Below are positions 5,099 through 52,989 of a stretch of 64,000 bases of DNA, in pieces. The position numbers and the translations under genes were made by a program. Source of the DNA: Entomortierella parvispora E1425 (taxonomy: Eukaryota; Fungi; Mortierellomycota); assembly GCA_020891255.1 (NCBI GenBank), contig BQFW01000006.1, positions 62,001-126,000 of the forward strand, in the 5' to 3' direction. Within the stretch, counting starts at the first letter, position 1; each line of letters begins with the position of its first letter. Below the pieces are notes generated by a model. The model did no database searches. It worked only from the letters and a program-made list of their open reading frames with translations, and was not told the DNA's origin.

Positions 5099-5651
5099 TA
5101 GTCTCGTCACCATCCCCTCCGCCGGTTCACAGGAGAGTCACAAGTGCTGACGCACCTGCCTTTTTAGGCAGCTCTCACTGAAAACCTCTAGAGGGGCTGG
5201 TCGGCAAGTAAGGTTTCCACTATGACCCTGCAGAGCTCTGTCAAAAAAATAACGGCAAAGTCGAAAAACAGCTCAGTTTTGCTCATCCTCCCTTCATCAT
5301 TCACCTCATCTCGCACCATTAATCTATGGTCGCCTTGCCATTCCACTCCCATTCCCCTCCCATTCCCCTGTTTCCATCGCAATCTTCCACTCTCAGTGCG
5401 TTCTCGCTCTCTTGACGACCTTCATACAAAGCGCCTCCGCCGTTCCCCGTCTCTCAGGTTATTTGTTTTCGCTGAGAAAAGTGCTCCAGGTACGCCTTCA
5501 TGGACACGAATATATGAACTAGCACGCTCTGGCCATGGAAACTAACAGCTATTCCCTCTTCTACACCAAAAGCCCAGTCCTCAATTGATCCCCCCGCTCT
5601 TCAATTGATCCCTCCGTCCTCATATCCCGTCCAATTGGTATCACGCTAGTA
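5099..5651 (+). repeat. Left terminal inverted repeat (553 bp)
   Basis: Reverse complement of 10797-11349; the identical 107-aa and 64-aa ORFs appear on opposite strands in the ORF track. Confidence 0.95.
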
Positions 5652-8764: not shown

Positions 8765-10797
8765 TCACCGCTTCAGAGCAGAGGGGCCGAAATGTTGAAT
8801 AATTGATATTGTAGGAGGCGTGGAAGTATTGTCTTGAACTTGATTGCTTCTCTGTGGTGATGGCGGAAGAAAATATTGGATTACCTTGAGTTCCTTTTGT
8901 TTAGACGAAGGGTTGTTCTCTGTTGCTGTTCCTCCCTTTTTTCGTATCGCCTTCGTTTTTTTTGGAGGTGTTTTCGGGGGTTTAAGCAGCAATTGCGTGA
9001 GATTTTTGCTTTCCTTGACTTGTTGCGGTGGAAGGTTTTGATCAATCTGCCGCTGGCCATAGCCGTCCTGCAGCGAATGAATCTCCATTTCATCTTCACT
9101 TATTAGTTGGTCTGACTGTTGCTGGTCGCGACTGGCTGTGGAAACGACTTGCATTTCCTGCTGATCCGTTGTGGCACTGATCAAAGGAGGAATTTGAAAA
9201 GATGGGGCCATTCCAAATTGCCGCCGTCGCTCCTTTTCTTGGCGATTTTTTTTTCCTTCTCGTCCTTCTCCTCCAAGAATTGCTTGCCCAAACCCATGAT
9301 GATCTCTAGCACCTGGCTTGGATATGTTTCATTCAGTGGGTCCCAGTATAGCATGTCGATTGATCTGGCAGCAATTATACTCTTGTACTTCTTGACGGTC
9401 TTGTTTAACATGTAGTCGGTCATGACCGTTTGTTCTGTGTCGTGCATGCGGCCCTTAAAGTGCAAGTCATACATATTATCCCTCCATACTATCAGCGCAT
9501 TCCGGACTTGTTCCGCCTCATTCTTATCCCATTTCTCTCGTTTCGATGCCTTGTCTGCTGGCTGAATTGTTGACGACTCGTCCTTGTCATCAGCTTCATC
9601 CGGATTGCAGATATTGCAGCACACGTCCGTAACTGGGACGTGCTCGTTCCCGTAGTAATCGTTAAAATACTTTCGGATACATCCAGGAGAGTTCGCTAGG
9701 TCAATAAGGTCTTTAAGATCTTGCTGAACGGGATCTTTTTTTTTGGGGGTAACTTTTGGTGCCGATTTTGGGACCAAAAATATACCGTATCCTTGGATTG
9801 TGCCGTCCCTTGCAGCTCGTCCAAATCGCTGAAAAAGACAATTTATATCCCGAGGGTAGCCATACTGGACAACACGAGCGATATCCCTAATGTCACATCC
9901 CATACCTGCGGCTTCCGTTGCTAGCAAAATAGGATATTTGCCTTCACGGAACTCCTTCATGCGACGATTCTTGAGATCATCGGTTTTGAAACCATGATAC
10001 ACCCGAACTTGTTCTTGGCCGAACCAAGTGCGTAGAAGGTGTCCAGCTTGCTCTGCTAAATCCCGGTTGTCGAAATAAACGATGGTCTTGGCCTTGTCCT
10101 TCAAGAAAAGGAGATCTTTAAATGATGATACGGCCTCCTTAAATGAAGTGACCTTGTACATGATATTGGGTCGATCGTTACCGATGTTGATGATAGTCGG
10201 GTTCATCATGTCCAGTGATAGTATTGTAGTCTTCAAAATTGATCTGGGAAGTGTAGCCGAGGCAGCTATGAAAGGTGCTCGATTGTTTAGCCTGTAGCGC
10301 AACTTAGCAAGCTCCCCAAAAGCGTGGCGAAATGACGATCCCCAGGCGTGGATGCAATGGGCTTCATCAACAACAACAGCGCGTATGCTTTCAGCCCATT
10401 TGCTGTTTTCCCAAAGACCCTTTAATCGTTTGGATTCAAGAAGCATCTCTGGAGATAGAAAAATTGCCCGATATCCACCTTGGAGGACTTTGGAGGCGTT
10501 GATATCCTTATCATCCTCCGTGATACTGACACATTCGATGTTGAGATTCTTGAGCTTGTCTCTTTGTTCGATGCCAAGAGCCTTAAGAGGTGTTATTACA
10601 AGGATGGCAGCGTCACTCCACAGAAATAGTGGAAGAGTGAAGGCCAGAGTTTTTCCCCAACCTGTGGGGGCAATTAAGACGCAATCTCTCCGATCAATAA
10701 TGGATCGGAGAACGTCCAATTGCTCGGGCTTGGGGATGACGCCGAGTTTGTCTTCGCAGACACTTATGACGCGATCAGTATCAGACAAAGGAGGCAT
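8765..10797 (-). CDS. RecQ-like superfamily-2 helicase of AcademH (538 aa to stop at 9181; probably ~677 aa to 8765 with a slip in an A9 run)
   Basis: APTGWGKT (motif I), VVDEAH (II), SAT (III), ATEAAGMGCD (V), QRFGRAARDG (VI), Cys-rich RQC-like CIRKY..CCNIC. Adding one A at 9246-9254 reads through into ORF 8765-9211. Confidence 0.9.
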
Positions 10798-11349
10798 ACT
10801 AGCGTGATACCAATTGGACGGGATATGAGGACGGAGGGATCAATTGAAGAGCGGGGGGATCAATTGAGGACTGGGCTTTTGGTGTAGAAGAGGGAATAGC
10901 TGTTAGTTTCCATGGCCAGAGCGTGCTAGTTCATATATTCGTGTCCATGAAGGCGTACCTGGAGCACTTTTCTCAGCGAAAACAAATAACCTGAGAGACG
11001 GGGAACGGCGGAGGCGCTTTGTATGAAGGTCGTCAAGAGAGCGAGAACGCACTGAGAGTGGAAGATTGCGATGGAAACAGGGGAATGGGAGGGGAATGGG
11101 AGTGGAATGGCAAGGCGACCATAGATTAATGGTGCGAGATGAGGTGAATGATGAAGGGAGGATGAGCAAAACTGAGCTGTTTTTCGACTTTGCCGTTATT
11201 TTTTTGACAGAGCTCTGCAGGGTCATAGTGGAAACCTTACTTGCCGACCAGCCCCTCTAGAGGTTTTCAGTGAGAGCTGCCTAAAAAGGCAGGTGCGTCA
11301 GCACTTGTGACTCTCCTGTGAACCGGCGGAGGGGATGGTGACGAGACTA
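10797..11349 (-). repeat. Right terminal inverted repeat (553 bp)
   Basis: Mirror of 5099-5651; ends ...GACGAGACTA. Confidence 0.95.
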
Positions 11350-18733: not shown

Positions 18734-19223
18734 TACCCGTGTAACGTCGGCAATCAATTGGAAGCCGTGCAATCTTGCTACATTTTACACTTCTTCACGC
18801 TGATGAATATGGCTCAGTTTGCAGCATGCTCCATTCATGTGCGTGTGTGGCTGTGTCCAGCGGGACAAATCAGCTTGGCTGCATTATGGAAAACGTTGTC
18901 AACCTTTTTTTCATATTTTTTATGGTCTGCTGGACTCGGTGGAAGAAGCGCATTTTGCCGCGCGATATAACTTCAGATACCCGTGTAACGTCGGCAATCA
19001 ATTGGAAGCCGTGCAATCTTGCTACATTTTACACTTCTTCACGCTGATGAATATGGCTCAGTTTGCAGCATGCTCCATTCATGTGCGTGTGTGGCTGTGT
19101 CCAGCGGGACAAATCAGCTTGGCTGCATTATGGAAAACGTTGTCAACCTTTTTTTCATATTTTTTATGGTCTGCTGGACTCGGTGGAAGAAGCGCATTTT
19201 GCCGCGCGATATAACTTCAGATA
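18734..19223. repeat. Apparently exact 244-bp tandem duplication upstream of the HPP gene
   Basis: TACCCGTGTAACGTCGG... at 18734 and 18978; 2-bp TA microhomology at the junction. Confidence 0.95.
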
Positions 19224-20552: not shown

Positions 20553-20609
20553 ACGCTACCCATGCTATTGAAAGTTCAGTTGCAATCTCAAGAAACAAAC
20601 GGGAGGAGA

Positions 20610-20679
20610 ATGCACGAGCTAAAATGCTGTTTGGAGGTAGGGATGCATTGAACGCCCTTCAGACGCGACTGCAAATTGC

Positions 20680-20715
<36 letters not shown>

Positions 20716-21540
20716 TTCACAACGACCAGTACATGAAAAGCAGTGGTGCCATGATAACTCTACCGCTGAAAACTAAGTCATCCGGGCTTCCTTCGACATC
20801 CGTCGACAGTCCCTTGGCATACAACGGATTAAGACCACCCTTCAGCCATAATTTCTACTGGCTATCTGACAAACAATAATGCAGCTGCGTTGGAAGGACC
20901 CTGTCGTGGCACTGCGAAATCTTTCAGTGGTGCCACTCCTTTAGACCTAACAAACAAAAATAACAATTGGGTGGAATAAAAACCTTTGAAGACCTCCTAA
21001 TAGACAATGGTGCATTCCTCGTTAAGAACCCATCTACTTGATCACCACCATCAATTAGTTTAGCAGCCAGAGTCTTTGTGCACAAGTATAAAAGATAGAG
21101 CGTTACCTTGAATAAACATCAGTTAATTACTCACCAAAATACGATCACCCTGACCCTGTTTCCCTGACCTGACCTCTTCCTCTCCACCCGTCCCAGATAA
21201 ACTTAGCACAAGTTTATTGCTCTTGGTTCTCGCTCTCCTGACAGGGAAAGTTGTTGGACCAGAGAAAGAGCGAGTAATAGTTTTCTCCAGTAAGCAGAAA
21301 TCCATGTTCCTGGTTGATCCATGATATGGGTGAGTCCTGGAAGCCCCGAACGGTGAAATTGGCCCATCCAGGCTCACTACACGTCGTATCCAGAATGGAT
21401 TGAATCAGTGAGGTTGCATCATCTGTAATGACCTTTAAATGACACTCCACACTTTGAAGGGACGGCATCGGTATTCACTATGGAATATACCTGTCAGACT
21501 GCATGCCAGTCATGCCAATCCATTCATAAAGCTCCATGAG
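20610..21540 (-). pseudogene. 3' fragment copy of Rpp40 plus its downstream region
   Basis: Homologous to 24110-25320. Exon 7 and flanking intron sequence are deleted, TVWGF became TVRGF, and the C-terminus is degenerate. Confidence 0.85.
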
Positions 21541-21709: not shown

Positions 21710-23718
21710 CTAGTTGAGCAGCGATTCCAAAACTTCCATCTCGTGCTGCATCACTGCCTGGTCTTCAGTGAGGAAAGATCTTCCGAAGTCAATGAACGAG
21801 AACCTGGAATGACGACCTTCCTGCTTAACTACAATGTTCTGTCGTCTAACATCACCATGGGCGACTCCATGCCGATGGATTTCCTTCAGTGCCCCTCGGA
21901 TTTTGTTTCGATCAGGCCCGCTTAATATTTTCCGGCTGATGTTCTCTCCAACAAACTCGGTAGCCAAGACCATTTCCACCCCGTATGAAACTCCGGCAAA
22001 TGCAACATGGGGAATAAGCCTTCCTTGCAGGCCTTGAAGTTCCTCGTAGATCATCGCCTCGTGCTGAAGGGCCTTGGCCACTTCTTGCTCATTATGCAGA
22101 TCGCACTTTTTCACAACTATGTCGTGGCCCATGCACAGCACCCTCAACACTTGAGCACCATCATTGTCGTAAGACATCACCTCCAGAATATCATATGGGG
22201 GTAATTGGAACTCGGTCGTGCGACTGGACATTCTGGTTTGAACCCCTCGGAAGATATTCCTAGTACAGTCGAATGAGAAGGCATGTCCTCCATTAATGTA
22301 CGCTCGAGATCATCTTTCTATTCCAATATGATACATCAACTTACTTTAATGCGCCCGTGCCTCCTTTTTTCCCTGGTGGATTGTATTTGGAGTCCTTGTC
22401 TTCCTTTTTGTAGTGTTTCCTTTCTTCATTTGCCCGCATTTTTTTCTGTTGACTTGAATTGGGACGATTTAACTCCCTGTGTGGGTCAGCACTCACGAGT
22501 CTTGTGAAACACAAAAAGGTCCGCAAAAATGTTGGATCGTTGTCATTGATTGCAATAGCTGGCGACACCAGAAGTTCATCGTAGTTCCTCCCCACACGCT
22601 TCATGAACCAGGACTGCTCGTGAGTCGACAGCATACCGTATCGGTATCCATTGGCCCATTGGTAGCCATACTCCTGGCCGAGAGGATGGACCGCGCGGAT
22701 ATCCCCACGGCTGTAGTCCGCCACCAGATCAAGTGACGCCAGAACACTCGGTTTTTTCATCTCAACGGGAAAGAGATAAATCTCTAAACCGTTTTCGTCA
22801 AGCGCTCTGCAAATTAGGTCTGGTTTTCCAACACCAGGTTGACCAAACGAAACATGAACACTTCCTACTTTTATCAAACTTGAATGTGGAGGCATCACGC
22901 TTAAACATCTCAAGTCTCCCCTGAGAAGTTCGTGCAGTCCCTCCTCCAACCAATAGTCTCTGTCGGTTGGAAACGACGGACGACTATATCGAGGGATCTC
23001 GTCCAGGTGCACGTTCAGGATCTCTTCAAAGAAGTTGTTCCATAGTCGAACACTGTGCGGTGATGCGGCAGATGAGCTCCAAGAAGATGGAGGATCAGTG
23101 CGATCATTCCCTCGGAACGTTGTATCTGGTGGAAGGGTGTGCACCAAGTCAAACTCACTGATGTGATCTGTAGCATCACAATGGTCAGTTTCGATGACAA
23201 CAAAAAACATCCAGCATTCAAGAAGAGCGCCAAAACACCAGATTCTTTATACGTACCAGGAAGCGTTCCTTGAGAACCTTGGGCAGAGGAATCTAGGAAC
23301 GGGAGTCGTAGAGTAAAAGATGAGAACAGGCATGAGCAACTTTGAATAGACAAGTCGTTACACAAGGAAAAAATTCTTGGAAAACACGATGACGACTACC
23401 TGACTGCGGGCGCTGAACGATGATGCGAATTGAATTCTCGGACATCTCCAATGGGAGAGCCTGGGATAGTGTGGCAATCGGGTCCAGCTCTGTTGAATTC
23501 TCGCCCAGGAAGATTCGCTTTTGCTTGTTTGCCAAATCGTAGGGAATGGACACGCTCCAGAGTGCAAGGTCTTTTGCCAGCACATTGTCAGAAGGTCTGG
23601 AGATCTTGGGGTTGATTTCGTCCCTGAGTTTAGCGATTGACCAGGTGGGCTCCACGTCGACAAAGAACGCATTTTTCTGGAAGTCACCTTCCACGAGACA
23701 AAGAAGCTTGGTAACCAT
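21710..23718 (-). CDS. Crinkler (CRN) effector-like protein: N-terminal ubiquitin-like CRN domain, restriction-endonuclease-like domain, kinase-like domain (4 exons)
   Basis: LLCLVEGD..AFFVDV..AKDLALWSVSIP..IRIIVQRP header; exon 23718-23400, micro-exon 23292-23257, exon from 23167 (KPDLI..FPVEMK; YGMLSTHEQSWF), last exon with HGVAHGDVRRQN and FIDFGRS. Confidence 0.85.
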
Positions 23719-24685
23719 GGTACTGCGAAGAGAATGCCAAGGGGGATGGAGCGATTGAAGAGCACTGAGAAGGCGAAGCGAAAAATGAAGACAGGAGACT
23801 GAGATGAAGAGAGGAGAGGGAGAGAGCGATGAAAAGAGGATTGAAGGCAGGAGCTGGATCGATTGCAGGAATGACGGTCGGTGATGAAGACAAGAACTGC
23901 ATTGACGCGTTGCAGCTGTTATTTCCTACGCTTGGACCTCAGCAATCAACAAGCCTTATGGCTGCAAACAGAAGACTGACTGGTCTACGTTGACTCAATA
24001 AAGTCATCGTTGCACATGTAGATCATCATCAACCAAGTCGGCGACTGACTGGGATGCAGGAGGCAAGAGATGAGAGTGGAAGAGAAGAACGCCTCAAGAA
24101 ACAAATGGGAGGAGAATGTACGAGCTAAAGGTACTGCTTGGAGGCAGGGATGCATTGAACGCCCTTCAGACGCGATTGCAGTTGTAACTTTTTTCTTTTT
24201 TTTTTTTTTTTTGTTCACATCGACCAGTGCATGAAAAGCAGTGGTGCCATGATAACTCTACCGCTGAAAACTAAGTCATCCGGGCTTCCTTCGATATCCG
24301 TCGACAGTCCCTTGGCATACAACGGATTAAGACCACCCTTCAGCCATAATTTCTACTGGCTATCTGACAAACAATAATGCAGCTGCGTTGGAAGGACCCT
24401 GTCGTGGCACTGCGAAATCTTTCAGTGGTGCCACTCCTTTAGACCTAACAAACAAAAATAACAATTGGGTGGAATAAAAACCTTTGAAGACCTCCTAATA
24501 GACAATGGTGCATTCCTCGTTAAGAACTCATCTACTTGATCACGACCATCAATTTGATCAGCAGTCATCGCTGGGCGATGGTGCTGGAGGGGTAAGTTAT
24601 CTGATCTACACAAACTCCCTGAATGCCTGGTGTGTCCCTTCTTCTTTTCATTTATTTGATGGGGGGGGGGGGTATCGTTTGATGT

Positions 24686-26512
24686 CTATGAGTGAGTGTC
24701 ATGCGCTCCGACGCTCTCCAGCATCACATAAGTTCCTTTGTCTTGGTTCTCGCTGTCCTGACAGGGAAAGTTGTTGGACCAGAGAAAAAACGAGTAGTAG
24801 TTTTCTCCAGTAAGCAGAAACCCATGTTCCTGGTTGATCCATGATATGGGTGAGTCCTGGAAGCCCCAAACGGTGAAATTAGCCCATCCAGGCTCACTAC
24901 ACGTCGTATTCAGCGTAGACCTAATCATTTTTCGAACCAACTGTTAGTTTCAAGCAAGCACTTCTCACTCCAAGATCAAAGCCGGGCAATTCAACAAGAG
25001 CCACGTCTTACCGAAGATCGTCCATGAGCTTACTGATGACGGTGGAGGGTACAAGTCCAGACACCTCGATCAACCATCCTGAACTTGCGACGGAAGTTTC
25101 AGTCTTTTGTGGCGGCGCACTGTACACACAGAGAAATGGATCAATCTTGTTGCCCATGACAATTCTAAATAGAGAGGGTTAAATCCAGGGAGGTTTTAGC
25201 ATCTGTAATGACCTTTAAATGACACTCCACACTTTGAAGGGACGGCATCGCAATTCACTATGGAATATACCTGTCAGACTGCATGCCAGCCATGCCAATC
25301 CATTCATAAAGCTCCATGACCGATGTTCGCCAGTTGAGCTCACTCTTTCCAATAGTTCGTATAGCTGAGGTGTCTGGAACAATGATATTTGGAAGATGTG
25401 TGGACTGAACGTTGAACGACAGACGTGTGGCGCGTGCGGACTCTGGGAAAGACAGTGGTAGCGAAATGCCTAGAAGATACAAAGACGCATAGTAGAAAGC
25501 AAGATGTTGAGGCGGTTTAGTATATCAGCGATATGATGTCGCTGTCCTTTTAGCCAGATCATAAACTTGCCTTGGTCGTCAACACTGCCTAGAACCATGG
25601 GAAACACGGTAACCAAAGTATTCTCAAAACACCACTTTATCCTCTCGAATCCTGGCTTTCCAGGTGTCATGGATGATGCACGCATATCAATCTTGACAGC
25701 TGAGAGATATGAGAATCAGAAAAGGCAATAGATTTGTCAGACCTTTTGAGCTGTTTGCATATCACATATCACCTGTCATAGTGGCGGCTGTCCTCTGTAC
25801 GTACTGTATCGCTGTCTATCAGGATGAAACTTTGAAGGGGTCCCGGAGAGTCCAAGTTGCTCGTATGTATCCTTTGTAAGCGACAAGATCAAGTTGCCTA
25901 TTCAAATTACAAAATCGCCAAGGCATAGGGTGAGATTTACAAACTCATGATCCACATCGAACAACTCTTTTTCAGAAAGCCAGTCTGCTAAGGATACCTT
26001 TCCCATCGAGACAGACCACGTCCTTTGAGTCGATCGTTCCCTGAACCGAGATGGCGATCATACCTAGCAAAGGCAATATGAGGGTGTTAATGCATGGACG
26101 ACGGAATACACTCAGGACAATCGATCAAGGCCGCTCCTGACTGATGTACCGTTGCGGATATGTTGCATGAAGGTTGGGGTCAGAAAGAGGGTCAAAGGCA
26201 CATGGGCATGGTAGTAGTGAGCGTCCTGAAAGAGTCTACTCGCGAGGGTGGTAAGGGCCTGCTCTGAAAGCGCGGCCGGCAAAAAGACTTGGACCTGTTT
26301 TTCCGACAGGGAAGGAAAAAAAGTATTGTTAATTTGGGGCGAGAAAATGGTTCACCACCAAAAAAAACTTTTTATCAAAGGAATGTTACCCGCTGGTTGA
26401 ATGGGTGGTTCTGGATGAGGCGCTGGTGCAGTTGCTTGGGGGAATGGAAAGAGTATTGAGAGATGAACTGGCTGGCGCGAGGCGGGGCAGTCTTTGGGAA
26501 GAAGGTCGACAT
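24686..26512 (-). CDS. RPP40: Ribonuclease P/MRP protein subunit p40 (8 short exons, intact)
   Basis: Hand-spliced in frame: QNHPFNQR|VQVFLP..YHAHVPLTLFLTPTF|GMIAISVQGTIDSKDVVCLDGK|GNLILSLTKDTYEQLGL|..ERIKWCF..|LYEWIG|DPFLCVY|WANFTVWGFQDSPISW..EHG..GENYY; intron 5 has a GC donor. Confidence 0.9.
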
Positions 26513-27309
26513 GAGGGAAAGGAGAGAGAAGGGATGCAGGAAAGAGAAGAAAGAGAGGAGGGATGCAAGAGAGGGTGCCACCAAAAAGGAAGAAACAAGC
26601 AGACAAGTCAAAACTAGGACCACAGCAGCATGGGCAAAGCCACCCACACAGAAGTGAAATTTTTATCCCTTAGTCTGTAAAATATGGCAAATTTGCCCGT
26701 TAAAAATTTATTTTATCTGAGTTTTAATATTATTCTCGAAAAATCACTAGGCCACCCCTCCCCCGTTTCTAAGCTCAGATGAAAGAACGGGCAAAAATGC
26801 ATTAATGTCAGGACTCACCGAAAGGAGCAAGAGGCGCCTGACGAACTAGAGCAAGATGAACAAGAGGGAGATCAGGTGCAGGAGGGAGATCAAGAGGAAG
26901 AGCCTCTATAACGAAGGAGAGGGAGAAAGAAGACGAAGCCCAACATCAAATTGCCTGATCCAATCCTCCAGAGTTCGAGCCTCTGGTCCAGAACATCCGG
27001 CGTGGATATGTCAGTATCCAGAATTCACATTTTTTGGGAACAAGCAATATTCACAGAAATTTATGGTCACGTGTATGTAATTAAGGGCGTACCATAAAGT
27101 CCAGGGGGCGGACTTCGAGGTACGATGAAGCAAATCCATTCTGAAAAAAAATGCAAATCCATTCTGGCCGTTCATCCTGCCAGCCCCCTTTTCTGATAAG
27201 ACAACAGACCAAGAGTGTATTCAAACTAGCGCATGAACTTGAGAGACTGCAGTAGTTAAGTAGTCATTACAGAATTAAAGGGATAACAAGTAGAAAGCCA
27301 GAATGTTGT

Positions 27310-31796: not shown

Positions 31797-33329
31797 GTGT
31801 TCACGTTAGACCAATACAGTCTGGATCCTGTTTTCCAGGGCATCGTACCACCACCCATCACTCTCTTTCGATTTTTCTTCACAGACTTCATGCTCGATAC
31901 AATCGTTAGGAACACCAATCTTTACGCCGAAAACAAAAGAGCTGAAGCGGGTGCAACTGGTCGTGCTTGGAAATCAATGACCAGAAACGAACTTGTTACC
32001 TGGATCGCCATCACCATTTACATCGGACTTCACAAAATGTCGTCGTTAGTACAACTCTGGAACACAGAGCGAGCGGCACCGACACACTACATATCAAGGT
32101 ACATGAATAAATTTCGATATGAGCAGATCAAGCGTTATTTCCAAGTGTGCGCCCCAGATGCCGTTATTGATGAGTACTGTGATAAAGTCGAGCCACTACT
32201 GTCACATACCCGAGATACCTCAAAGCGACTCTACACGCCAGCATCGAATGTCCCCATCGATGAGATGATGATCCAGTGTTCGGGACGAAGTGCTCATACC
32301 GTTCGTATGAAAAACAAACCGATTACGGAAGGCTTCGAGATATTCTCTCTCTGCGATGCAGGATACACCTACACTTTCATTCCATCATCTAGGGTTCAGT
32401 CAGTCCGAGTTGAAAAAATACCCGGCCTCACTCAAACAGGGAACATTGTCAACCATCTTGTCCAACAGCTACCGAAGAGTCCACATTACCGCGTTTTTAT
32501 GGACAACTACTTCACCAGTGTCAAACTTTTCCAACACTTTCGAAACCTCAGCGTCGGCGCCTGCGGCACTACAAGAAGGCAGGGTGGAGTCCCCAAGGAG
32601 TTATATGTCGACAAGAATGCAAAGCTCGATTGGGATACTAGGTCTGGTGTTGTTGTCGGCGGCGTACTGGTGGTCTTTTGGATGGATAACGGCCCGGTTA
32701 CGATGATGACTACGATTCATGGCAAGATAGGAGATGAATGGGAGGTGATGCGAGTACGACGTCGGCCCAGAGAAACAAGTACTAATGGGACCAAGGTGCG
32801 ATCCATTTTCGGCAATGAACCCAAAAAGGAACTCAAGATCCTCAAAGTCATCGATGACTACAATCTCAACAAGGGTGGGGTTGATATTGCAGACCAACTT
32901 CGGTCATATTACAGCATGCAGCAGACTGCACATCGAAACTGGTGGCCGATCTTTTTCTGGCTCCTGGATACTACGATCATCAACTGTTATCTCATTGCTC
33001 GAAAAAAAGCATCCATTCTCACACACAGAGAGTTCCGCAGCTCTCTTGTCTGGGGCTTGATTGACTCAGTTACCACCACAAACATTACCAAGCGCCGCAA
33101 GGCCGATGATCCCGTTCTAGTTGAGGAGATCGAAGGGGCGACATGGAGACGTCCCCGCGTGACCAAAACGTTCACTCTCCCAAACGACCGGTTTACTGAC
33201 GACAATCACTTTCCTGTTACCAGCAATGAACGATCCACCTGCCTTCTCTGTTCCTGGAAAGCCAAGAACAAGCTCATCTTCATGGATCACAAAAACCCTG
33301 TTCAGTCCAATATATGGGGCCTGGAATAA
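31797..33329 (+). pseudogene. piggyBac-family transposase relic (DDE_Tnp_1_7)
   Basis: PIDEMMI, FMDNYFTS, GGVDIADQL (DDD triad intact). No ATG start; C-terminal Cys-rich domain broken by a stop (WGLE*GVPLC); no right TIR/TTAA found. Confidence 0.85.
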
Positions 33330-33369
33330 GGAGTTCCTCTGTGTAGCAACAAAACGAGGCAATTCCAAT

Positions 33370-34270
33370 CTGTCTACTGTACCCAGCATAGGGGTCCACG
33401 ATTTTTTGGATCTTCCTCTCTAAAACGTCATTCTCAAAGAACTCGAGCATTCAGGGAGGTGAAACAGTGCTGTAGCCATCACAGTTCAAATTACAAAAGG
33501 TCTATAAAATGGTAAGGAAAACAGTTTAGTGCCAAGATACTTATACAGACGCATTACGGGAACCAGCATGGGTTTGCATATACAGGGAATACATACCTCC
33601 CACAGCTTGAAGTAGGTTTTGTACGCTTGAATTGTCTTTGTAGGCGGTCGGGTGAGGATACCTTCAAGGACGACTTGAGCAGACTCCTTTCTTTTGGCAA
33701 GAGCGACTTCTGCTCTAAGTGTGATTGATGGTTGGTCATCAAGTGCACATGGAGAGAACAAGGACTTGTTCCATCTCTTGGCTGAAGAAGGAGGCCCTGT
33801 AGTCACTGTAACCATCGGTTTCTAGGCACGTTTCTCGTTTAGAACAGCATCGTCAGGGTGGGTTTGTTCCTGCCTTCTTTTCCCACGTCCAGTTACCACT
33901 GCAGCTGCAGCTGCAGTCGCTGTCTCTATAGCATCTGGCAAAGCAGACGTTTCCTGCTGCGTTGTCTCGAAAGAAGGCGATGAGGACGCGTGTGCATTTT
34001 GGACTCGTTGCTGGAGGTGTCAACGGGGGGCCATAGGACTGAATCGCGGAGACTGCCTCGGAATAGGATGCACTCAAGGTAGACATGTCAGCGGTGGAGG
34101 CTGCTGTCGCTTCCTTGGTGGGTAACAGGATCATGCGACTCTGCGGACAACAAAGCTCTTCCGATCTTCCGCGGCGCTTGGCTGGAGCGTCGGTGGAGGC
34201 TTGCAGTCGGGATTTATTGCCTACAGGGTTTTTCGTCGTTCAGATTTTCCGGTGTTTTGCTGGGCATGAT
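33370..34270 (-). pseudogene. 5' remnant of a Crypton recombinase gene (#2), divergent from the PIN-Fanzor gene
   Basis: RPPTKTIQAYKTYFKLWE|intron|TFCNLNCDGYSTVSPP*MLEFFENDVL matches the N-terminal motif and intron position of the other Cryptons in the window; in-frame stops; cut off at the piggyBac junction. Confidence 0.6.
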
Positions 34271-34887
34271 GGAGTCAATCAGCAGGGGATGAGCAGGAGC
34301 AGGGAGTTTGTGGAGATTTTTGCGGAGAAGAGAGCAGTGTTGGATAATGAAAGCATGAAGGCGCACCAGACCCAGATTAATAACATTTATAACTGCAGAG
34401 ATCAGATGAGAGATGGAGCGGAGGACTACCACGCCCTGCAACAGAGACAACGACAATAGGATAGTTTGGTAGGATGGTGAGATGTGTTCAGGTACCTTCG
34501 CATTCCATGCTGATGGCCCTCGGGCATGCCTGATTTTGCACTTCTAAGCCACCAGGGACACTGACCTTGTCTTTTTGTGACTGTTTTGAAAGCGTCGCCA
34601 TGCACGCGTTACGCGACAAGTTGCCTCGGCTTTCTTCCTTGCCTCTGCACCTGTCCATGACCCACCCAGCATCGCGCAGAGACAAGCCTCACAAGCCTTA
34701 CCAAGAAGCCCTAGTCCATTAATCTCCAATCACGCATCCAAATTCGACAGCTGAACGTTTCCCCATTCACGGAAAGAGGTGAGCCCTATAGCCACGCACA
34801 CGCATGCAAGCATGCAACCATTGTGGCAGCCATTGCATTGACACACTCCAACATTACTCACATATTTCTATTTTTGGGATATCAGTA

Positions 34888-37800
34888 ATGGGAATCCGCG
34901 GCCTTCCCAAGGCGATGCGAGATAGTGGGGCAATAGCTGGGCAACCCTTGAAGGAGTCATCAAAGCCCGTCCACGTGGATTTCTTGGCCTATTGTTTTCG
35001 TCTTGTGCAAACAAGGGCATTTGGGGTTCTCCAAAATGGCTTGAAGAAAGCCGTGTCAATCTCTGCAAGCTCTGCCCCCGCTCCGGAGTTGGAGTTTGAA
35101 ACCGATATGACCACAGCAAGCTCGCGGAAAAGAAAAAATGTGGCTGAGCACAGCCCTGCCTCCATTCGCAGCGCACCCCCCGATGATCCTGTTCCTTTTG
35201 GTCCCAAGCAGACACTGACTGAATTACTTGAGGATGTCCTCGCCAGCGGTGATCATAAGAACATTTTCATCCACCCTGATGGTCTCTCCGACGTGGAAAG
35301 TAAAAAAGATCAGCAGGTAAGACATGGTCATAGTTGTTCGTCACTGTACCTGAGGCTGCTTTCTTGTCCTTAATTGTGATTGCTTGCATTTAACTATGTA
35401 GAACTTTCGATCCATTGGATACATGTTGGATGACGTTCTCTCCAGCTCATTCAACAAAAATCTCACAGTACTTCACGTTGATGGTGAGGCGTCAGAACAA
35501 AAGAGACAGGAACATCGACGCAGGAATGAGTACCTTCGAAAGGCTCTAGGTGGTCTTCAGTCCAAAGTCAACAACCCTGGATCTAAGCCAAACAAACAAC
35601 TCTTCCGAGCCTGCAGAAACCTCTATCGCCTTCCACGAGAGAATCTCCACCACGATGTCATATCGGTTCTTGAAGAGCTTGGATGGTCGATTGATTACTG
35701 TCAACATCAAGCTGACACCTGTCTAGCTGCCGTATGCCAAAGCAGTGCTCCTGGCTCTATCACTATCGTCACGTCGGACAGTGACCTCATGGTCTACGAA
35801 GGTGTCCAGAGCGTAGTGATGCCGGTTGGCAGGAAAAGGGAACTTCTGACATTTGACAAAAAGAAATTGATGGACCATCTGGATCTCCCGACTGAGCAGC
35901 ACTTACTGCTGGCATGTATCGTCACTACCAACGACTACGTCAAAAATATCCCATACTTTGGGCTATTAACCAATTGCGATATCGTCCGTGGCATGGACCT
36001 TTCAGCTCTGGGACCACTGGGAGAAATGGCCAACAATGCAGAGAGAGCTGAGGCGATCATGCCCTTCGTGCAACGTTATATTGATGAGGTAAATCGTCGA
36101 CTCGTTCAGCGGAAGCTCGAGTCAAAGCGCAAGACGAAAGCTCCAGCTATTCAACAAGGTGGCATTGATGTTGAAGTGTGTCACTACCACCACTCGGTGA
36201 CAGCCTTCGTTGCAAGGGCCGAGACTTCAATGGCTGAGCCACTTCTACAGGAGGACCAGAGCCCTCGTTCCCACTATGTAATCACCGCGTTCCTCCAGCA
36301 AATGTATGCACGCAAAGCCCAGAAGGAGCATTCTCGGCGATTCAAGGCCTCTACGAACGCTTTGATACAGCATCCGTCCACAGACACAGTCTCGACAATG
36401 GAGCTTTCGGCCACAGTGGCTGATTTAGACGTTGAGTCTGTGCTCTCATCAACATCCACGCAGGTTGGTCCCAAAAAGGTCTGTGCGAGTAGCCGAAAGC
36501 GGAAAAGTTCCCAGAAACGGCTGCAGAATCGGAAAGATCGATTCAAGGACAGGCTAGCAGAAAAGAAGCGAAAAAAATGGGAGGATTCACAGTAAGTTTG
36601 GCTATCTACAGAGCTTTGATGTCCTCACACTTTCACTATGCATGGTTCGTCCCTTGCTCATTTATCATCATTTTCTTGTCTACATAGGTTCAGACCACGT
36701 ACACACGATCAGGGACAGTATGTGGTCAGATCCGTCAACATTCTAGACGCTCCTGGTGTTGAAGAGTCGGAGCTTTTGAAAATGACCATACCGGCTCCTC
36801 GCATTAGAAAGGCGACTGGTGACTCAAAGAAGGTCGACTCCAACAACAACGGCAACTCTGCGACCACATCGTCCAACGGTCAAAAATCGAATGCGAAGAA
36901 GAAGAGGAAGAAGCCTAGAAAACCAAAAAAGGCAAAGTCTGGTCCCGCTTCACTAAAGACCGGATTTTCGACCTCGTTTGCAACCTCAACACAGACTTTG
37001 GGTAGCGTCCAAGGGTGCCTACGACGAGCACTTTTACCAGCCGGGGAAAGTGGGAGAATTCAACGCCTGAGCAACAATGACATCAATGCGATTGCCAATA
37101 GGATCGAGGCAGCCGTGTCCACCATCGCAGAGGCTCGCATGTACGTTTGTCGTTTACTTGACATCCTGGTGTACGATGCGCTCTTAAAGCAACAGACTCC
37201 AGAAGCTGCCCCCGAGTTGCACGGAGAAGCCTTTGATGTACTCGACTTGTTGCTGGAAAAATCCACCGGCACTGCGATTATCAGATACTTCTTTGCACTT
37301 GTCCTGAATGGCAAAATCGACGCAAGAGGCAAGAAGATAGTCAAGGAGAAGACTCTGGCAGCCAAAAGAATGGCGGAGGCGACCTATGCACGATTGAAGG
37401 ATATGCTCCCGGGTCTAACAAGTGTGAACAGGAGGCAGATACCCCTCTCGAGAGTAATAGTCCATGCATCGATGGAGATGGGGGTGCAGCTCCGGAAACA
37501 CTTTAAGGAAATCCCGTTCACGATAGGCGGCAGGGTAAGCTCCTATATTTTTCTGCCATTTCTCTCTTGCTCAATCTCTACCCTCACATATTTGTATGCA
37601 GACTATGCATCATACTAACCGGTAGCCCCATTCCACTTTTGCTGAAAAATAGATGAAGAAATGTGGATGGAAGGAAGAAGACATTCCACAAGGGGCGACT
37701 AAGGGCGACAACAACGACGACGATGAGGACGACGAAGACGATGGGGAGGATGAGGTCGAGGAGGATGACGGGGACGAGGAGGGCAATGACGATGATGCCG

Positions 37801-39108
37801 AGTCTTGCTTTAACAAGGGCCACATTCAGCGGTGGTGGAGAGAGGCACGCAGACTGCCGTTGCCAATGATGCCCGTGTTCAGCCTCCGCTATCAGTTCAA
37901 GGATCCCTTTGTGACTTTCGAAGAGAGGGCACTCCCTGCCATTTTGTGGTCAACATCGAAGTCGCGTCCTAATCCAGCTGCGGCAGCTGCGTCGAAAATT
38001 CTTTCTGCGAAGGAAGCCACGAAACTTACTGAAGAGCACTATGGCGAGTTGACCAGGACACTCTTCTATGGGGATCCGGATGAGATCAGGAAAAGCAAGC
38101 GAGTGTGGCAAACACCGTATGGTCGACGTTCAACGACCATGCATGCTTTGGCCAAAAGTTGCGGCGACGTATTTTCATCGACTGCCCTCCACACCTTCCT
38201 GGATCTAAAATTCACCCATGTTGCAAAGACCATCGACTGTCTGGAAAAGGGGATCCCTTGTGACAGTGCACCTCCACCTTTGCCAACTACACGTCTTCCT
38301 CAGGAACTCCGCCCATTCTGTCCTCGCTATGCCATCAACAACATTTTTTCAACAAACGGCACAGAACTCAATATCAATTGCTACGATACGACAAAGCCTC
38401 ATCGAAAACAATCGATGTTCGTGCCGATTTACCGCATCGAGAACAAGTTCCCGACCACAAAGTCTATCCTTGATGAATTTGGCGTTTCTTCCATCGATGA
38501 GATCGAGGTTTGGGGTGTTGATCCGGGCGAGGTGAACACAGCTGCTTTTTGTCGGGTCGTAAGGGAGGAATCAACAACATCAGACACCGCCTCATCCACC
38601 ACAGTCTTCCGACCAGGAGTGGAAGCAAAGAACCTGACAATCAACAGGAAGGCCCTCTATCAGCCCGTTTTTGCACATCGGGAACAAATGAATGCGCTGA
38701 TCTCCAAGAGAATATCCATCTCTCAAGGTCAGCCTATTCAGGGAGCTCTTTGGGCCAAAGATGACAAGACCCTTCGTGATGACAGTGTTTGTCTGCCTAG
38801 TATTTCAGATGTTCAGGACAGACTTCCATCTCGACAACACACGAGCACAGACGACATTGAGCACTCCACAAAGACTTTTTTTCAAAGTCAAGGTTTACTC
38901 CACGGCTTTTACTCAGCGAAGCGGATCAAGCGCATGGCATGGTCGTTGAAGAAAGCCAAGAAAGCAGAGATTGACAGGGCTATTGATTCAATCTTGAAAC
39001 AATGCACCAAGAAGACTCTCTTCTGCTATGGCAACGGATCATTCAGGACGGGGATTAATCTTGCGTCGCCACATGAGACATTCAAGGCGATATTCGCGCA
39101 AAAGGTAG

Positions 39109-39141
<33 letters not shown>

Positions 39142-39551
39142 CGCTTCATATCGATTGCTTTGTCTCCAACTTTTGAAGAAGCTGACTTTTCTATGATTTG
39201 GATATATAGGCCACCGCAGCAGGCCATATCGTCGTGCTTGTTGATGAGTACCTCACCTCTAGCCTATGTCCAAGCTGCCTGGAGACGGGAGTTTCCTCCC
39301 GACTGGCAAAGCCCACCATGCGGTCGTGTGTGTGCCTTGTGTGCGCCAGATGGCTGCACAGAGATGTCATCGGCGCACAAAATATTGCAGTAGCAGGGGA
39401 AGCGTGGCTTCATACTCAAGCCAGACCCCTTCCCCTGTGTCGTCCGATCAGCAGTACCAACCTCCCTAAAACCAATATCTGCGCCGAAAACGCAGTCACA
39501 TTTATCTCAAGTAGTCAGATAGACAGCAACCGTATGACAGTTTACAATTAG
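34888..39551 (+). CDS. XPG/FEN1-type PIN nuclease fused to a Fanzor (TnpB-like RuvC) nuclease, 1419 aa, 5 exons
   Basis: Exons 34888-35316, 35402-36591, 36688-37534, 37653-39104, 39210-39551 (4260 nt, all GT-AG, phases 0/2/0/0, no internal stop). PIN motifs MGIRGL, HVDF, HVDG..K..EHRRR, QAD, TSDSDL, NDYVKNIPYFG. RuvC motifs WGVDPG, YGNGSF, VDEYLTSSLCPSC, CLVC, HRDVIGAQNI. Confidence 0.9.
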
Positions 39552-43746: not shown

Positions 43747-44839
43747 GGCTTTCTTCTCAGTTGTGTCTGATTTCGAATTGATAGGACGGGGCCTCTGGGT
43801 TGGGTGTTGGCGTGTTATGACGGTACGATGGATATGATGGGGTGATGTGCCGCTGTGTGTGTTGCATGCCTGCATGTGCGAATGTTCGCGTGCCTGCTTG
43901 GGAGGAAGTAGAGTATCGTTGCACGTGACCAAAAAAGCAAAGAAAAGGCTTCTTCCATTCACACCTTGTTCGCCTTTCATAATGGACATAATGGACATTA
44001 CTGTTATTAACCCACATCAGGAACAACAGCATCACCAGCATGGTCAGCACGATGATGTCCTTGTCCCTCAGAGGGGTCGTTGGTGCCCGGTTGGCACTAA
44101 TACCTTCTTACTTACTCACCACCTTTCCCAGCAAACACGCACCACGCATGCTGGTCGCCAGGCTAACCACCACCTGATCATCTCACGCACCACTCACAGT
44201 GGTCGTCGCAGCGTTGGTCACCGCCAGAGTGGCCCTGGCCCTTTGGAATCCCTTCTCTGAACTTGTGGACCTTGCTAGTCTTGACAATTTTATAGTGCAA
44301 GGCTAAAAGAGACAGGTCGCAAGTCTCTCGGAGTATTGTGCTATTGTGTAGATGCGTATTATAAAAACAATCGTCGTTTAATAAATGGCAGTGTTGATTC
44401 TGTCTGTTTGACGTATTCGACTCGATTCCTGGGGTGCTGAGGAGCTCGCGCTCTGTGTTCTTCTGCTTCTGCCTTTTTTCTTTTTTTTGTCACTTTTGTA
44501 TTATTTTTTATTAATTTTATTTTTTTTATTATTTTATTCGAGGAGTGCACAAGGACCGGTGTTATTATTATACGGGGGTGTCAGTCAAAAAGTGGGAGGA
44601 GGGGGGGCCAATCAGATGCTGGCAGTGGTCCATACCTTTGGTATGGTTGTGAGAAATGCTCTCTTTCATAGAGTGAGCTCAAGGATACCAACGGTATCTG
44701 ACTTGAGAAATTTCTCAGCGTGACTGAGAAATTAATTTTCATACAGCTGAAGAGATAGGATAATCTCATGTCTGTCAGAAGTCGACCTTCATTCCTTCAT
44801 TCACTCACCTAAGCAACAAGGAAGCGACCTGCTTACGGG

Positions 44840-49423: not shown

Positions 49424-51331
49424 TTAGTGCAACAGTGATTCCAACACTTCCATTTCCTGCTGCGTCTCTGTTTGATCTTCTGTGACGAAAGACCTTCCAA
49501 AATCAATGAAGAAGAATTTAGAGTGACCATTTTCTTGCTGCACCACAATATTTTGCAGCCGCAGATCACCGTGCACAACTCCATGTTCGTGGATCGCCTT
49601 CAATGCCTCTCGTATCTTGTTTCGGTCTGCTTCATTCAAACGCCGCTCTTTGATGTTGGCTCCGGCAAACTCGGTCGCCAGGACCATCTCCACCCCATAC
49701 GAAACTCCAGCAAAGACAACATGGGGGATGAATTTTCCTTGCAGCTCTTCAAGTTCTTCATAGATTGCTACTTCATGTAGAAGTTCCTTGGCTATTTCCC
49801 GTTCGTTATGGACATCGCACTTCTTGACCACGACATCCTTGCCAAGGCATGAAACCCTCAGCACCACGGCACCATCGTTATAGTATGACAACACCTTCAA
49901 AACATCGTAGGGAGGGAAGTTCAAGTCAGCAGAGCGAGTCGATCTTTTGTTTGAGCCACCTTGAAAGAAATTCCTAATATATTCGAATAAAGACGCATGT
50001 TTTCCATTAAAACACATATTCGAGATTATGTTTTCTATTCCAGTGGGATGCATCAACTTACTTGAATGACCTTGCACCCCCTTTTCTAACCGCTGGCTCG
50101 TATGAGGGGTCCTTGTCTTTCTTCTTGTAGTGCTTGTTTTCTTGTTTTGTGCGCATCGAACTCACTTCTTCTTCAGTGGGTTGGTGGAGCTGCCTGTGTC
50201 TATCAGACATGACCAGTCTCGTGAAACACAAGAACGTCTGCAAAAACGTTGGATCGTTGTCGTCAAGTGCGACACCAGGCGACACCAGAAGTTCATCATA
50301 GTTCGTGCCAACACGCTTCATAAACCAGGACTGCGCATGCGTAGACAACATGCCATACCGGTATCCATTTCCCCATTGATATCCATACGCTTGCTGAAGA
50401 GGATGGACCGCACGGACAGACCCAGCATTGTAATCCGAAACCAGATCGTCCGACGCCAGGACACTAGGTATTTTCATTTCCATTGGAAAGAGGAAAACAC
50501 TCCTCCCGTTTTCGTCCATCGCCCTGCACAGTAAATCAGGTATGCCTGTCCCTATCCTACCAAACGACGCATGCCTGTTCCCAACTCTTGCCAAAGTTGG
50601 TTGAGGAGGCAACACCCTCAAACAACCCAAGTCCTCTCTGAGCAGGTCAGTGAGTCCCGTGTCCACCCAATAGTCTCTTATGACTGCAAAGGATGGTTGG
50701 TCGTATTGAGGGTGGGCCTCATCCAACTGCACTCCAAGGATTTCCTCAAGGAAGTTCTCCCAGAGGGTTACCTTGAGAGGTGATGCTGAGGATACGCTCC
50801 AGCTAGATGGGATACCCTCACGATCACTACTACCCATGAATATTGCAGCTGGTGGAACATACTGCACAAATTCGAACTCGCTGATGAGATCTGCAGCATC
50901 ACAATAATAACAGTCTTAGCGAATATTTTCAAAAGACCACTTGTCGGCTTTCATACACACAATCATTCTTGTAATTAAATGTCAAACAAGGCTGCATTAC
51001 CTAGTCGCTGGACGATGATGTGGATGGTGTCCTCGGGCAATTCAGCGTCAAAGACCTTGGAAAGCTTTGTAGTGGCCTTGAGCTTCTTCTTATCGGTCTC
51101 CAGTAGGTTGTTAATGTAGATGGGGACCTCGTTGTTGTCGTCATTAGGGACTGGGATCGAGACAAGCCAGAGGGTGAGGTCCTTGGCCTCAATGCCATCA
51201 AAAGTTTTGGGAATCTCGTCCTTGATGGCTTTTTTGAGGTGGTGGACTGTCTTCGATGGGTCAATGTCGACAGAGAATGGAGTAGCTTCAGTATCAACAA
51301 GGCAGAACAGACTGAGAATATTACTGGTCAT
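49424..51331 (-). CDS. Crinkler effector-like protein #2 (CRN header, REase-like domain, kinase-like domain; 3 exons)
   Basis: LSLFCLVD..PFSVDI..LKKAIK..AKDLTLWLVSIP..IHIIVQR; exon 51331-51001, exon from 50890 (PDLLC..FPMEMK), last exon with HGVVHGDLRLQN and FIDFGRS; paralogous to 21710-23718. Confidence 0.88.
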
Positions 51332-52104
51332 TGTGTTGCGAAGTATGGGAGAGGTTAGGCGTGGCAGTAGTGGCAAAGGAAGTGCGGGTGATGGCAAGGG
51401 TGGAAGTTGGGCTGAATGGAGTAAGCGAAAAATGACCAAAGGCAGAGTATTATTGTTTTTGTCCACAGGAATTGGTCAAGGCCATGTATAGACTTTTTTT
51501 TTAAATATTTTTTGCTAATTGTGTTGGGCAAAGAAAAGACCGAGAACGAGTGGGGGATGGGGCACATCAGCAACTTAGTTTGAGTCGTTGCGAGAGTCAT
51601 CTCCATCGTCGTATCAACGATGCTTTGTTGCAGGTTCATCCATGACGGATACTCGCTGCCTTGTCCCCCCTCAGTCTGGTCCAGCTGTCGCTTGACTCCT
51701 TACAGTAGATCCAGCGCCCGCATATGATTTTCGGGGAAGAGGTCGTGTATATTGTTCTTGTCAATTCTCAGCGAAATGCACTCGGGTCTGCCTCCTTGTG
51801 CCGCACGGTCACGAATTCGTTCACTTTCGTATGGTCACCGGAAATGTACCCTCGACACCTGCAAGCTCTGCTGGATAAGCAATAACAACCCCAAAGAAGC
51901 TTAGGATGGCCAGTACAATACTTCTCAAGCATTGACTCTTCAAGATGACCCTGCACTGCTTCAGGCTTGGCCGTAGAGAACGCATCAAGGTTATCTTTCT
52001 TTGTCATCTTGTGTTGCATCTTCAACTGAACGAAAACAGAACAGTAGCCATGACTGTTGAGATGAAGAACGAACACAATATCCGGCCCTGAGGGTGTCTC
52101 GGCT

Positions 52105-52629
52105 GATCCACATCGAACGGCGTCTTTTCAGAAAGCCAGTCTGCTAAGGCTACCTTTCCCATCGAGACAGACCACGTCCTGTGAGTCGATCGTTCCCTGA
52201 ACCGAGATGGCGATCATACCTAGCAAAGGCAATATGAGGGTATTAATACATGGACGACGGAATACACTCAGGACAATCGATCGACGATCCTGACTGATGT
52301 GCCACTGCGGATATGTTGCATGAAGGTTGGGGTCAGAAAAACGGTCAGAGGCACATGGGCATGGTAGTAGTGAGCGTCCTGAAAGAGTCTAGCGCGACCG
52401 GCAAACAGACTTGGACCTGTTTTTCCGACAGGGAAGGAAAAAAAGTATTGTTAATTTGGGCCGAGAAAATGGTCACCAAAAAAACTTTTTATCCAAGGAA
52501 TGTTACCCGCTGGTTGAATGGGTGGTTCTGGATGAGACGCTGGTGCAGTTGCTTGGGGGAATGGAAAGAGTATTGAGAGATGAACTGGCTGGCGCGAGGC
52601 GGGGCAGTCTTTGGGAAGAAGGTCGACAT
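52105..52629 (-). pseudogene. 5' fragment copy of Rpp40 (exons 1-3)
   Basis: Homologous to 25949-26512; 31-bp frameshifting deletion in exon 2, intron-2 donor GT changed to GC, homology ends inside intron 3. Confidence 0.85.
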
Positions 52630-52989
52630 GAGGGAAAGGAGAGAGGAGGGATGCAGGAAGACAGGCAGGCAGACAAGTCAAAAGGCAAGCACAGGCACAT
52701 ATGTACACACATACACGGGCAAAGCCACCCAAGAGACAGGGACAGACACAGGGACAGGGACAGACAGGGCAAAAGGAAAGCAGACTAAAATAATCGTGAA
52801 TACTTGTCGCGTCTGTCCTTTTGTTTGTTGTTGTCATTCGTTGCTGTCATTCCTTGCCGTCATTATTAACCATTGCCATTGCCATTCATCACCTTCTCCC
52901 TTCTCCCTTCTCCCTTCTCCCTTCTCCTTTCTCGCTGCACACTCTTCTTTCACCCGCACTCTCACTCTCTCTCAAACACTCCTTCAGAC

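Follow-up and report, generated by a model that had tools for sequence, protein, structure and literature searches.

The gene described here lies on the plus strand of a 64,000-nt stretch of contig BQFW01000006.1 of the soil fungus Entomortierella parvispora E1425; "the window" denotes this whole stretch. Judged by its sequence and by models of its relatives, the gene (34888-39551) encodes a Fanzor1-type nuclease with a FEN1/EXO1-type 5′-nuclease domain at its N terminus, and it is carried by a DNA transposon. We infer that the N-terminal domain would favor recombinational repair of the cut made by the Fanzor half, a mechanism to which we give about an even chance. Fanzors are, to our knowledge, the only eukaryotic RNA-guided DNA nucleases known; interest in them centers on compact genome editing and on their help in transposon survival. 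If the proposed reading is true, the present protein would be the first such enzyme with an end-processing activity of its own.

Gene structure and nuclease domains

The spliced frame consists of five exons and has 4260 nt (1419 codons plus stop) with no internal stop; residue numbers refer to this frame unless otherwise stated. The four introns measure 85, 96, 118, and 105 nt (junctions 35316/35402, 36591/36688, 37534/37653, and 39104/39210), all have GT..AG ends, and intron 3 contains the branch site TACTAAC. This structure had been proposed in the original prediction, and it was confirmed by joining the exons, by the annotations of a paralogue and of homologues, and by two related loci, L005 and L004. 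P0160, an annotated 97%-identical paralogue of E. parvispora (EMPS_07492), matched spliced residues 300-1412 with 97.8% identity and no gaps; thus, introns 2-4 are identical in its annotation. Exons 1 and 2 are joined at the identical residue in the annotated homologues P0003, P0004, and P0072. L005, a 4.5-kb contig from a public run that encodes a 40%-identical homologue, is intron-free and runs in one frame across all four junctions, with a single in-frame TAG. The codon position of intron 4 matches in the Mortierella sp. locus L004, and phmmer searches with exon 3 found the corresponding region in P0001, P0005, P0016, P0063, P0041, and others. The last 24 nt of the frame (39528-39551; seven codons and the stop) are sequence of a Crypton-like insertion, C2, that is absent from the paralogue. 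The native stop is a TGA directly after 39527, formed across GACAGC/TGA as in the paralogous locus L003. Because the last seven codons come from C2, the native protein has 1412 aa; the predicted length of 1419 aa holds for the frame as it stands in the window and not for the native product.

The N-terminal domain (34888-36127; aa 1 to ~385), which is split by intron 1, is by sequence and model of the FEN1/EXO1/XPG 5′-nuclease (PIN-like) type, and its nuclease activity is predicted. Exon 1 (34888-35316; aa 1-143) contains the MGIRGL start and the first active-site Asp, D31 (34978-34980). Exon 2 (35402-36591; aa 144-540) supplies the rest of the domain, with active-site residues D170 (35480), K177, R184, Q246 (35708), D248, D269, D271, and D321 (35933). 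Exon 2 alone matched Pfam XPG_I_2 at E 0.35, under the cut-off. A phmmer search against PDB aligned it with residues 77-243 of human EXO1 (E 0.0016), pairing its VDG motif with D78, QAD with E150/D152, DSD with D171/D173, and NDY with D225. When 300 exon-2 residues were used in an exhaustive search, 334 cluster representatives were returned, and every one whose source was checked was from Mortierellomycota; a word-based search with residues 1-400 of P0005 recovered three proteins only. When a 36-member family profile was compared with PDB, all 34 matches belonged to the FEN superfamily, including RAD2 (8e-14), FEN1 (1e-13, residues 1-256), EXO1 (5e-13), and XPG. Two members, P0127 and P0134, exceed the Pfam cut-offs for FEN-type models.

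Fold prediction pointed the same way. P0003 shares 62% identity with the window domain; its AF2 model had a pLDDT of 82.5 and a pTM of 0.77. A Foldseek search of this model against PDB gave EXO1, FEN1, Rad2, or XPG nearly throughout the top matches (best E 1.5e-8), with one XRN-type Rat1 match at rank 41; in the search against Swiss-Prot models, the best 30 matches were FEN1 or EXO1, with TM ~0.5. Six of the seven acidic metal ligands are present (D31, D170, D248, D269, D271, and D321), and the seventh is Q246. The six Asp residues, K177, and R184 are kept in 95-99% of ~150 clusters. The gateway residues K177 and R184, at +7 and +14 from the second Asp, are each kept in 105/108 sequences, and the MG[IV]xGL start and hVDh Asp are kept in homologues. 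An XPG/FEN1-type N terminus in which one acidic position reads Q, as proposed earlier, is thus supported by sequence, family profile, and predicted fold.

The C-terminal ~500 aa are, by sequence and model, a Fanzor1 core with RuvC residues D1112, E1319, and D1358; RNA guidance is predicted. RuvC-I D1112 lies in GVDPGE (38520-38522) and is followed by YGNGS; in alignment A3, conservation of the Gly and of the Asp reaches at least 90%. RuvC-II E1319 (39246) stands six residues ahead of the zinc finger (E1319-YLTSSL-C1326). The zinc ribbon is formed by C1326/C1329 and C1348/C1351 (39267-39344), and RuvC-III comprises R1357-D1358 (39360-39365; D codon 39363). The positions 38520, 39246, and 39363 given earlier for these three codons were exact. 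Exon 5 matched the Pfam model Cas12f1-like_TNB (PF07282; E 4e-7, 30.5 bits, curated cut-off 26.3), and its zinc-ribbon and RuvC motifs are kept in every related locus. Fanzors have been defined by the pattern D-x(125-275)-[TS][TS]-x-x-C4-x(5-50)-RD (PMC3627910), and their catalytic Glu has been placed six residues before the zinc finger (PMC13565253); the window protein fits both definitions. Because exon 4 gave no PDB match by sequence, as a single sequence or as a profile, the Fanzor assignment relied on the Pfam match of exon 5 and on a fold search. The AF2 model of residues 523-1113 of P0160 (98% identical) had a pLDDT of 68.8. Foldseek ranked the Fanzors SpuFz, PpFz, and GtFz first among PDB structures (E 1.7e-8 to 7e-7), followed by Cas12j, TnpB, Cas12f, and Fanzor2, with no other fold family at E ≤0.001, as fits the bilobed TnpB/Cas12 fold. 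The Pfam match, the motifs, and the Fanzor1 fold matches bear out the claim of a Fanzor with three RuvC residues and a zinc ribbon.

Between the two halves, exon 3 (36688-37534; aa 541-822) encodes a linker and a helical region that are conserved in the family. A basic tract resembling a nuclear localization signal (NLS) is encoded in exon 2 (~36485-36577), and a second basic tract in exon 3 (~36893-36940). Exon 4 (37653-39104; aa 823-1306) leads from an acidic tract through the Fanzor REC/WED part to RuvC-I, and the native part of exon 5 (39210-39527; aa 1307-1412) holds RuvC-II, the zinc ribbon, and RuvC-III.

Several minor observations concern the gene and its copies. Intron 4 contains a run of ~30 T (39113-39142), whose length differs from that in L003 (6-nt and 2-nt gaps). 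Protein annotations of several species end at the position of intron 4, the last exon having been missed. An in-frame ATG occurs 28 codons upstream of MGIRGL (34804-34887). Homologues begin at MG(I/V)xGL; therefore, transcription probably starts between the two ATGs. A look-up of RNA runs for the window gene listed none. Four runs bear the same species label, and a comparison of their contigs with the window gene found only short, 85-95% similar, unspliced DNA paralogues. Short contigs of three runs (X3, X4, and X10) cover 34756-35007, i.e., promoter and gene start, with 85-95% similarity, and their word depth was very high in another sample with the same species label. In that sample the fusion family is multi-copy, and the exact window copy is absent.

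The fusion family and its host transposon

The two-domain architecture, which the original prediction proposed to look for in other proteins, was found in more than eight annotated proteins of Mortierellomycota. Both halves are present in P0005 (Mortierella alpina), P0026, P0134, and P0156 (Mortierella spp.), P0063 and P0117 (E. parvispora), P0041 (Gryganskiella), and P0012 (Linnemannia gamsii), and P0184 (Linnemannia hyalina) aligns along nearly the full L005 frame. At the DNA level, both halves occur in loci L001-L005 and L009. Every related locus of Mortierellomycota that was opened (Mortierella, Entomortierella, Linnemannia, Gamsiella, and others) had the two halves with two conserved active sites; in L001 and L002 the annotation ends early, yet the last exon is present in the DNA. 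Members that are distant in the FEN part (P0117 and P0134, of the branch with Glu at the position of Q246) are likewise the most distant in the Fanzor part. This parallel divergence of both halves indicates that the fusion is older than the split between the Glu and Gln branches. Public names of these proteins are automatic ("PIN domain-like protein", "Cas12f1-like TNB domain-containing protein", "putative transposase"); protein sets already contain this large and, within Mortierellomycota, widespread family as unnamed or automatically named entries.

These loci also bear on the possibility that the halves are separate neighboring genes misjoined by the splice model, which we regard as very improbable. 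Many database entries contain one half only, and the in-frame TAG of L005 lies between the halves, as two genes would lead one to expect. However, the short entries are annotation fragments: the "stand-alone" 356-aa PIN protein of Gamsiella (L009) has an unannotated Fanzor part 1.7 kb downstream on the same strand. Further, more than eight annotated proteins extend over both halves, conservation covers the linker exon too, the window has neither a stop nor a start signal between the halves, and the halves of L005 share one frame.

L005-L008 are Logan contigs of SRR6256856, SRR6256858, SRR6256859, and SRR6256860 and represent the intron-free 40%-identical homologue; their in-frame TAG stands at the position of a Trp codon. 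Three of these contigs end on one identical base near the expected right end of the transposon. They may be transcripts or may mark the boundary of a multi-copy repeat; L005 resembles spliced RNA. In L001, an isolated second fragment of a Fanzor C terminus (299-397; zinc ribbon to RD) lies 3.6 kb upstream of the M. alpina gene.

Comparison with L003, which lies on another contig of the same species, delimited the element that carries the gene. L003 shares 26660-27015 and 31817-39527 with the window at ~97% identity. Its similarity begins at the left terminal inverted repeat (TIR; 26664-26703, plus strand; TATCCCTTAGTCTGTA ... GGCAAATTTGCCCGTTAAAA). The same sequence, inverted, closes the L002 element around P0063 (8602-8617), and a degenerate copy opens it (3337); this element is 5.3 kb long, and the fusion is its sole gene. 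TIR starts of the (TAT)CCCTTAG type are found at the left ends of the window element and L003 and at both ends of the L002 element. A search for the right TIR of the window element with the left-end sequence found none; the right end is degenerate in the window subfamily, and the TIR was recognized only via L002 and L004. A piggyBac-type transposase open reading frame (ORF; DDE_Tnp_1_7, PF13843, E 5.6e-57; 31817-33329, plus strand) is common to L003, where it is split into three frames. By sequence, the fusion gene is the right-end cargo of a TIR DNA transposon; in its autonomous form, this transposon would also carry the gene of a piggyBac-type transposase.

Two Crypton-like insertions, both on the minus strand and both absent from L003, interrupt the window element. 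C1 (27016-31816; CAGT..CAGT flanks; ORFs matching NDC10_II and GCR1_C) lies in the 5′ part of the transposase gene and severs the 5′ end of its ORF. C2 (39528-44746; CAGC..CAGC flanks; a tyrosine-recombinase ORF matching NDC10_II) lies 8 nt short of the right end of the transposon. Position 39527, where the similarity to L003 stops, was considered as the right end and rejected: the missing 12-mer CTGAAGAGATAG, which is next to GACAG in L003, recurs exactly at 44747, behind C2. The displaced true right end (44747-44757, plus strand; CTGAAGAGATA) matches the L003 right end exactly and resembles the ends of L004 (ACAGTCGAAGGGATA) and L002 (ACAGACTAAGGGATA). The native guide-side flank, placed by these matches, is displaced to ~44758; the 3′ flank that had been suggested for co-expression is C2, not the guide region of the element. 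C1 and C2 both carry Crypton-type tyrosine-recombinase genes on the minus strand and are related to each other, and both sit in one Fanzor transposon at CAGY sites, with 4-nt direct repeats and ends in ...ATA; the shared sites may reflect a target preference of these Cryptons.

A conserved block of 28 nt lies in the last exon (39479-39506, plus strand), 21 nt ahead of the C2 insertion point. It comprises a hairpin (CTGCG/CGCAG, loop CCGAAAA) followed by TCACATTTATC, and 26-28 of its 28 nt are identical in L003, L004, and L006-L008. Proteins there are 40-58% identical overall, and in L004 and L006-L008 the block lies past the stop codon; for this reason, its conservation is evidently that of a nucleic acid and not of a protein. 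The hairpin of L002 has a stem of 6 bp (5 bp in the block) whose sequence is wholly different, an AUCGAAA loop, and an identical AUUUAUC tail; the covariation of the hairpin rests on this one divergent sequence. We regard the block as a candidate for the 3′ part of an omegaRNA scaffold or for a subterminal transposon (transposase) site. The native reading frame stops only a few bases short of the transposon end; therefore, a scaffold would have to overlap the last exon, and the guide would come from the flank, as it does in TnpB and Fanzor systems. An Rfam scan of 33-44 kb gave no match, and the RNA fold of the 3′ region was no better than that of shuffled sequences (z -1.5). A long-range pairing of the RD codons with the block, suggested by RNAalifold, was dropped because it had no compensatory changes.

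Crypton-like insertions interrupt both the transposase gene and the scaffold-guide junction; the window transposon appears to be disabled at these two points, so that this copy would at best supply protein in trans. It is possible, though we consider it unlikely, that the window copy is an inert relic whose frame is open merely because the insertions and the duplication are recent, the protein not being made. The interrupted transposase gene and right end fit such a relic, as do the negative look-up of RNA runs and the lack of this copy in other samples with the same species label. On the other hand, the 4.26-kb, five-exon frame is free of stops and keeps every motif, and the divergence from the paralogue, judged from the sequences, shows purifying selection: dN/dS between the two copies was 0.35 for the whole gene (32 synonymous and 38 non-synonymous changes) and 0.22 for the Fanzor part (26 changes). 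A relic would, in any case, concern the window copy only, not the family.

Proposed mechanism, rival readings, and known systems

Resection of 5′ ends commits a break to recombination, and the substrates of FEN1 and EXO1 are 5′ flaps and 5′ ends. In the mechanism that we propose, the two nuclease halves would be held together by the basic, NLS-like, partly helical linker. After the transposon has left a site, the Fanzor half would cut the emptied site, and the tethered flap/5′ exonuclease would act on the 5′ strand or flap at the cut, thereby exposing a 3′ tail. Because of this tail, homologous recombination rather than end joining would repair the break and restore the transposon. Fanzor1 enzymes cleave double-strand DNA under RNA guidance (PMC10432273, PMC10530073). 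Nucleases of the TnpB type cut the donor site once it has been emptied, and recombination then restores the element (PMC13565253). Engineered fusions of 5′ exonucleases to CRISPR/OMEGA effectors are reported to give higher editing efficiency (PMC13434818). We suggest, more tentatively, that the protein might be a natural "self-resecting" RNA-guided homing nuclease, by which a transposon would steer its own repair pathway in a eukaryotic nucleus.

Several observations weigh against the proposed mechanism. An engineered fusion of T5 exonuclease to SpuFz1 lowered editing (PMC13434818). The fold evidence comes from the relatives P0003 and P0160, not from the spliced window protein itself. At its pLDDT of 68.8, the Fanzor model is moderately confident, and its TM values are low (~0.3), as is expected for a flexible multi-domain model. 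Unlike the intact fusion frame of the window, that of L003 is shifted within the FEN domain by an 11-nt deletion; dN/dS for the FEN part was 0.59 (21 changes), which is not significantly below 1. No TTAA or other target-site duplication and no target-adjacent motif could be read from the few ends available. Finally, the clusters divide at the counterpart of EXO1 E150, with 73 having Glu and 56 having Gln; the window protein and its whole branch have Gln, and Gln in place of a metal-binding Glu may weaken catalysis. In the alignments, this Gln has the character of a conserved alternative state, not of decay.

The same substitution raises the improbable alternative that the FEN-type domain has little or no catalytic activity and serves to bind DNA structures, holding the enzyme at flaps, nicks, or ends. 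The Gln of the whole branch would suit such a role, and the paralogue tolerates a frameshift in the domain. However, the conservation of the remaining catalytic Asp residues and the gateway Lys and Arg across the clusters is hard to explain without catalysis, and the sister branch, which is also fused to Fanzor (P0117 and P0134), keeps the Glu.

A stronger rival, which we nevertheless consider rather unlikely, follows from the presumed overlap of the scaffold with the last exon. The FEN-type domain would then act on RNA, trimming the guide or releasing it from the 3′ region of the Pol II transcript of the gene itself and standing in for the RuvC-based self-processing of bacterial TnpB. This rival fits the position of the scaffold candidate, which extends over the 3′ end of the coding sequence, and the run of the frame up to the transposon end; 5′-3′ exoribonucleases belong to the FEN superfamily (compare the Rat1 fold match), and the conserved Gln might be better matched to another substrate. 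Against this, the best sequence and fold matches over the whole core are the DNA enzymes FEN1, EXO1, and Rad2, and the Lys and Arg of the DNA gateway are conserved.

The Fanzor half resembles characterized Fanzor1 proteins (SpuFz1, PDB 8GKH; PpFz; GtFz) in its RuvC D/E/D residues, the Glu six residues before the CxxC..CxxC ribbon, and the RD motif. Its predicted fold matches their solved structures first. The window protein is, like them, encoded at the 3′ terminus of a DNA transposon and has NLS-like basic tracts. It differs in having ~880 extra N-terminal residues that include a complete FEN/EXO1-type domain. At 1412 aa it is about twice as long as characterized Fanzors (~600-730 residues in solved chains), and its RNA guidance is predicted. 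The N-terminal half shares with FEN1, EXO1, and Rad2/XPG (Pfam XPG_N, XPG_I, and XPG_I_2) the MG(I/V)xGL start, the acidic ligands, the DSD and NDY motifs, and the predicted fold; its gateway Lys and Arg correspond to K93/R100 of FEN1 and K85/R92 of EXO1. Unlike these enzymes, it has in the window branch Gln for one Glu, a ~90-residue disordered insert after the first helix, and a degenerate H2TH glycine motif; its own piece falls under the Pfam cut-off, and the domain is transposon-borne and fused to an RNA-guided-type nuclease.

In the engineered T5 exonuclease-SpuFz1 protein (PMC13434818), an RNA-guided RuvC nuclease is likewise joined to a 5′ nuclease that belongs to the same superfamily; this protein is man-made and has short linkers, whereas the window protein is natural and conserved and has a 500-residue linker. 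The Fanzors associated with piggyBac and Crypton elements in Repbase (PMC13565253) and MCi-2 of Mucor (PMC3627910) are also Fanzor1 cargo of DNA transposons in early-diverging fungi, with a piggyBac-type transposase in the same element and Crypton sequences alongside. In the window, by contrast, the Cryptons are secondary insertions and not the carrier, and the cargo is a fusion of two nucleases. Primary Fanzor papers (including PMC3627910) mention only variable or disordered N termini and NLSs; neither the main Fanzor papers nor a 2026 review mentions a fusion, and no description of a Fanzor or TnpB fused to an XPG, FEN, or PIN domain was found in the searchable literature, whose coverage is incomplete. 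The view that the architecture is unreported thus agrees with the literature that could be searched, and the picture of a singular gene gives way to a large family in public databases. Fanzors in transposons were already known; the novelty lies in the two-nuclease architecture and in how widely it is spread.

The proposed mechanism bears on how a nuclear transposon secures recombinational repair of its donor site where end joining competes. If the self-resecting reading is true, the protein would be a ready template for editors biased toward homology-directed repair or defined deletions. It also offers an evolution-tested design for comparison with man-made exonuclease fusions, and a large, diverse family with Glu and Gln branches provides many natural variants for testing.

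Other features of the window

The window is rich in transposons. Dispersed repeats pair 20587-21539 with 24093-25319, 25948-26542 with 52104-52659, and 21719-22961 with 49433-50678, at identities of 93-96% and 72%. A perfect 553-nt inverted repeat (5099-5651 and 10797-11349) encloses a DUF6589 ORF (5755-7863) and a DEAD/Helicase_C ORF (9181-10797); this unit has the look of a large TIR element of recent origin and of a different kind. Two ORFs of 538 aa, starting at 9181 and 39973, were compared and found to be unrelated. An exact 246-nt tandem duplication occupies 18734-18979 and 18978-19223.

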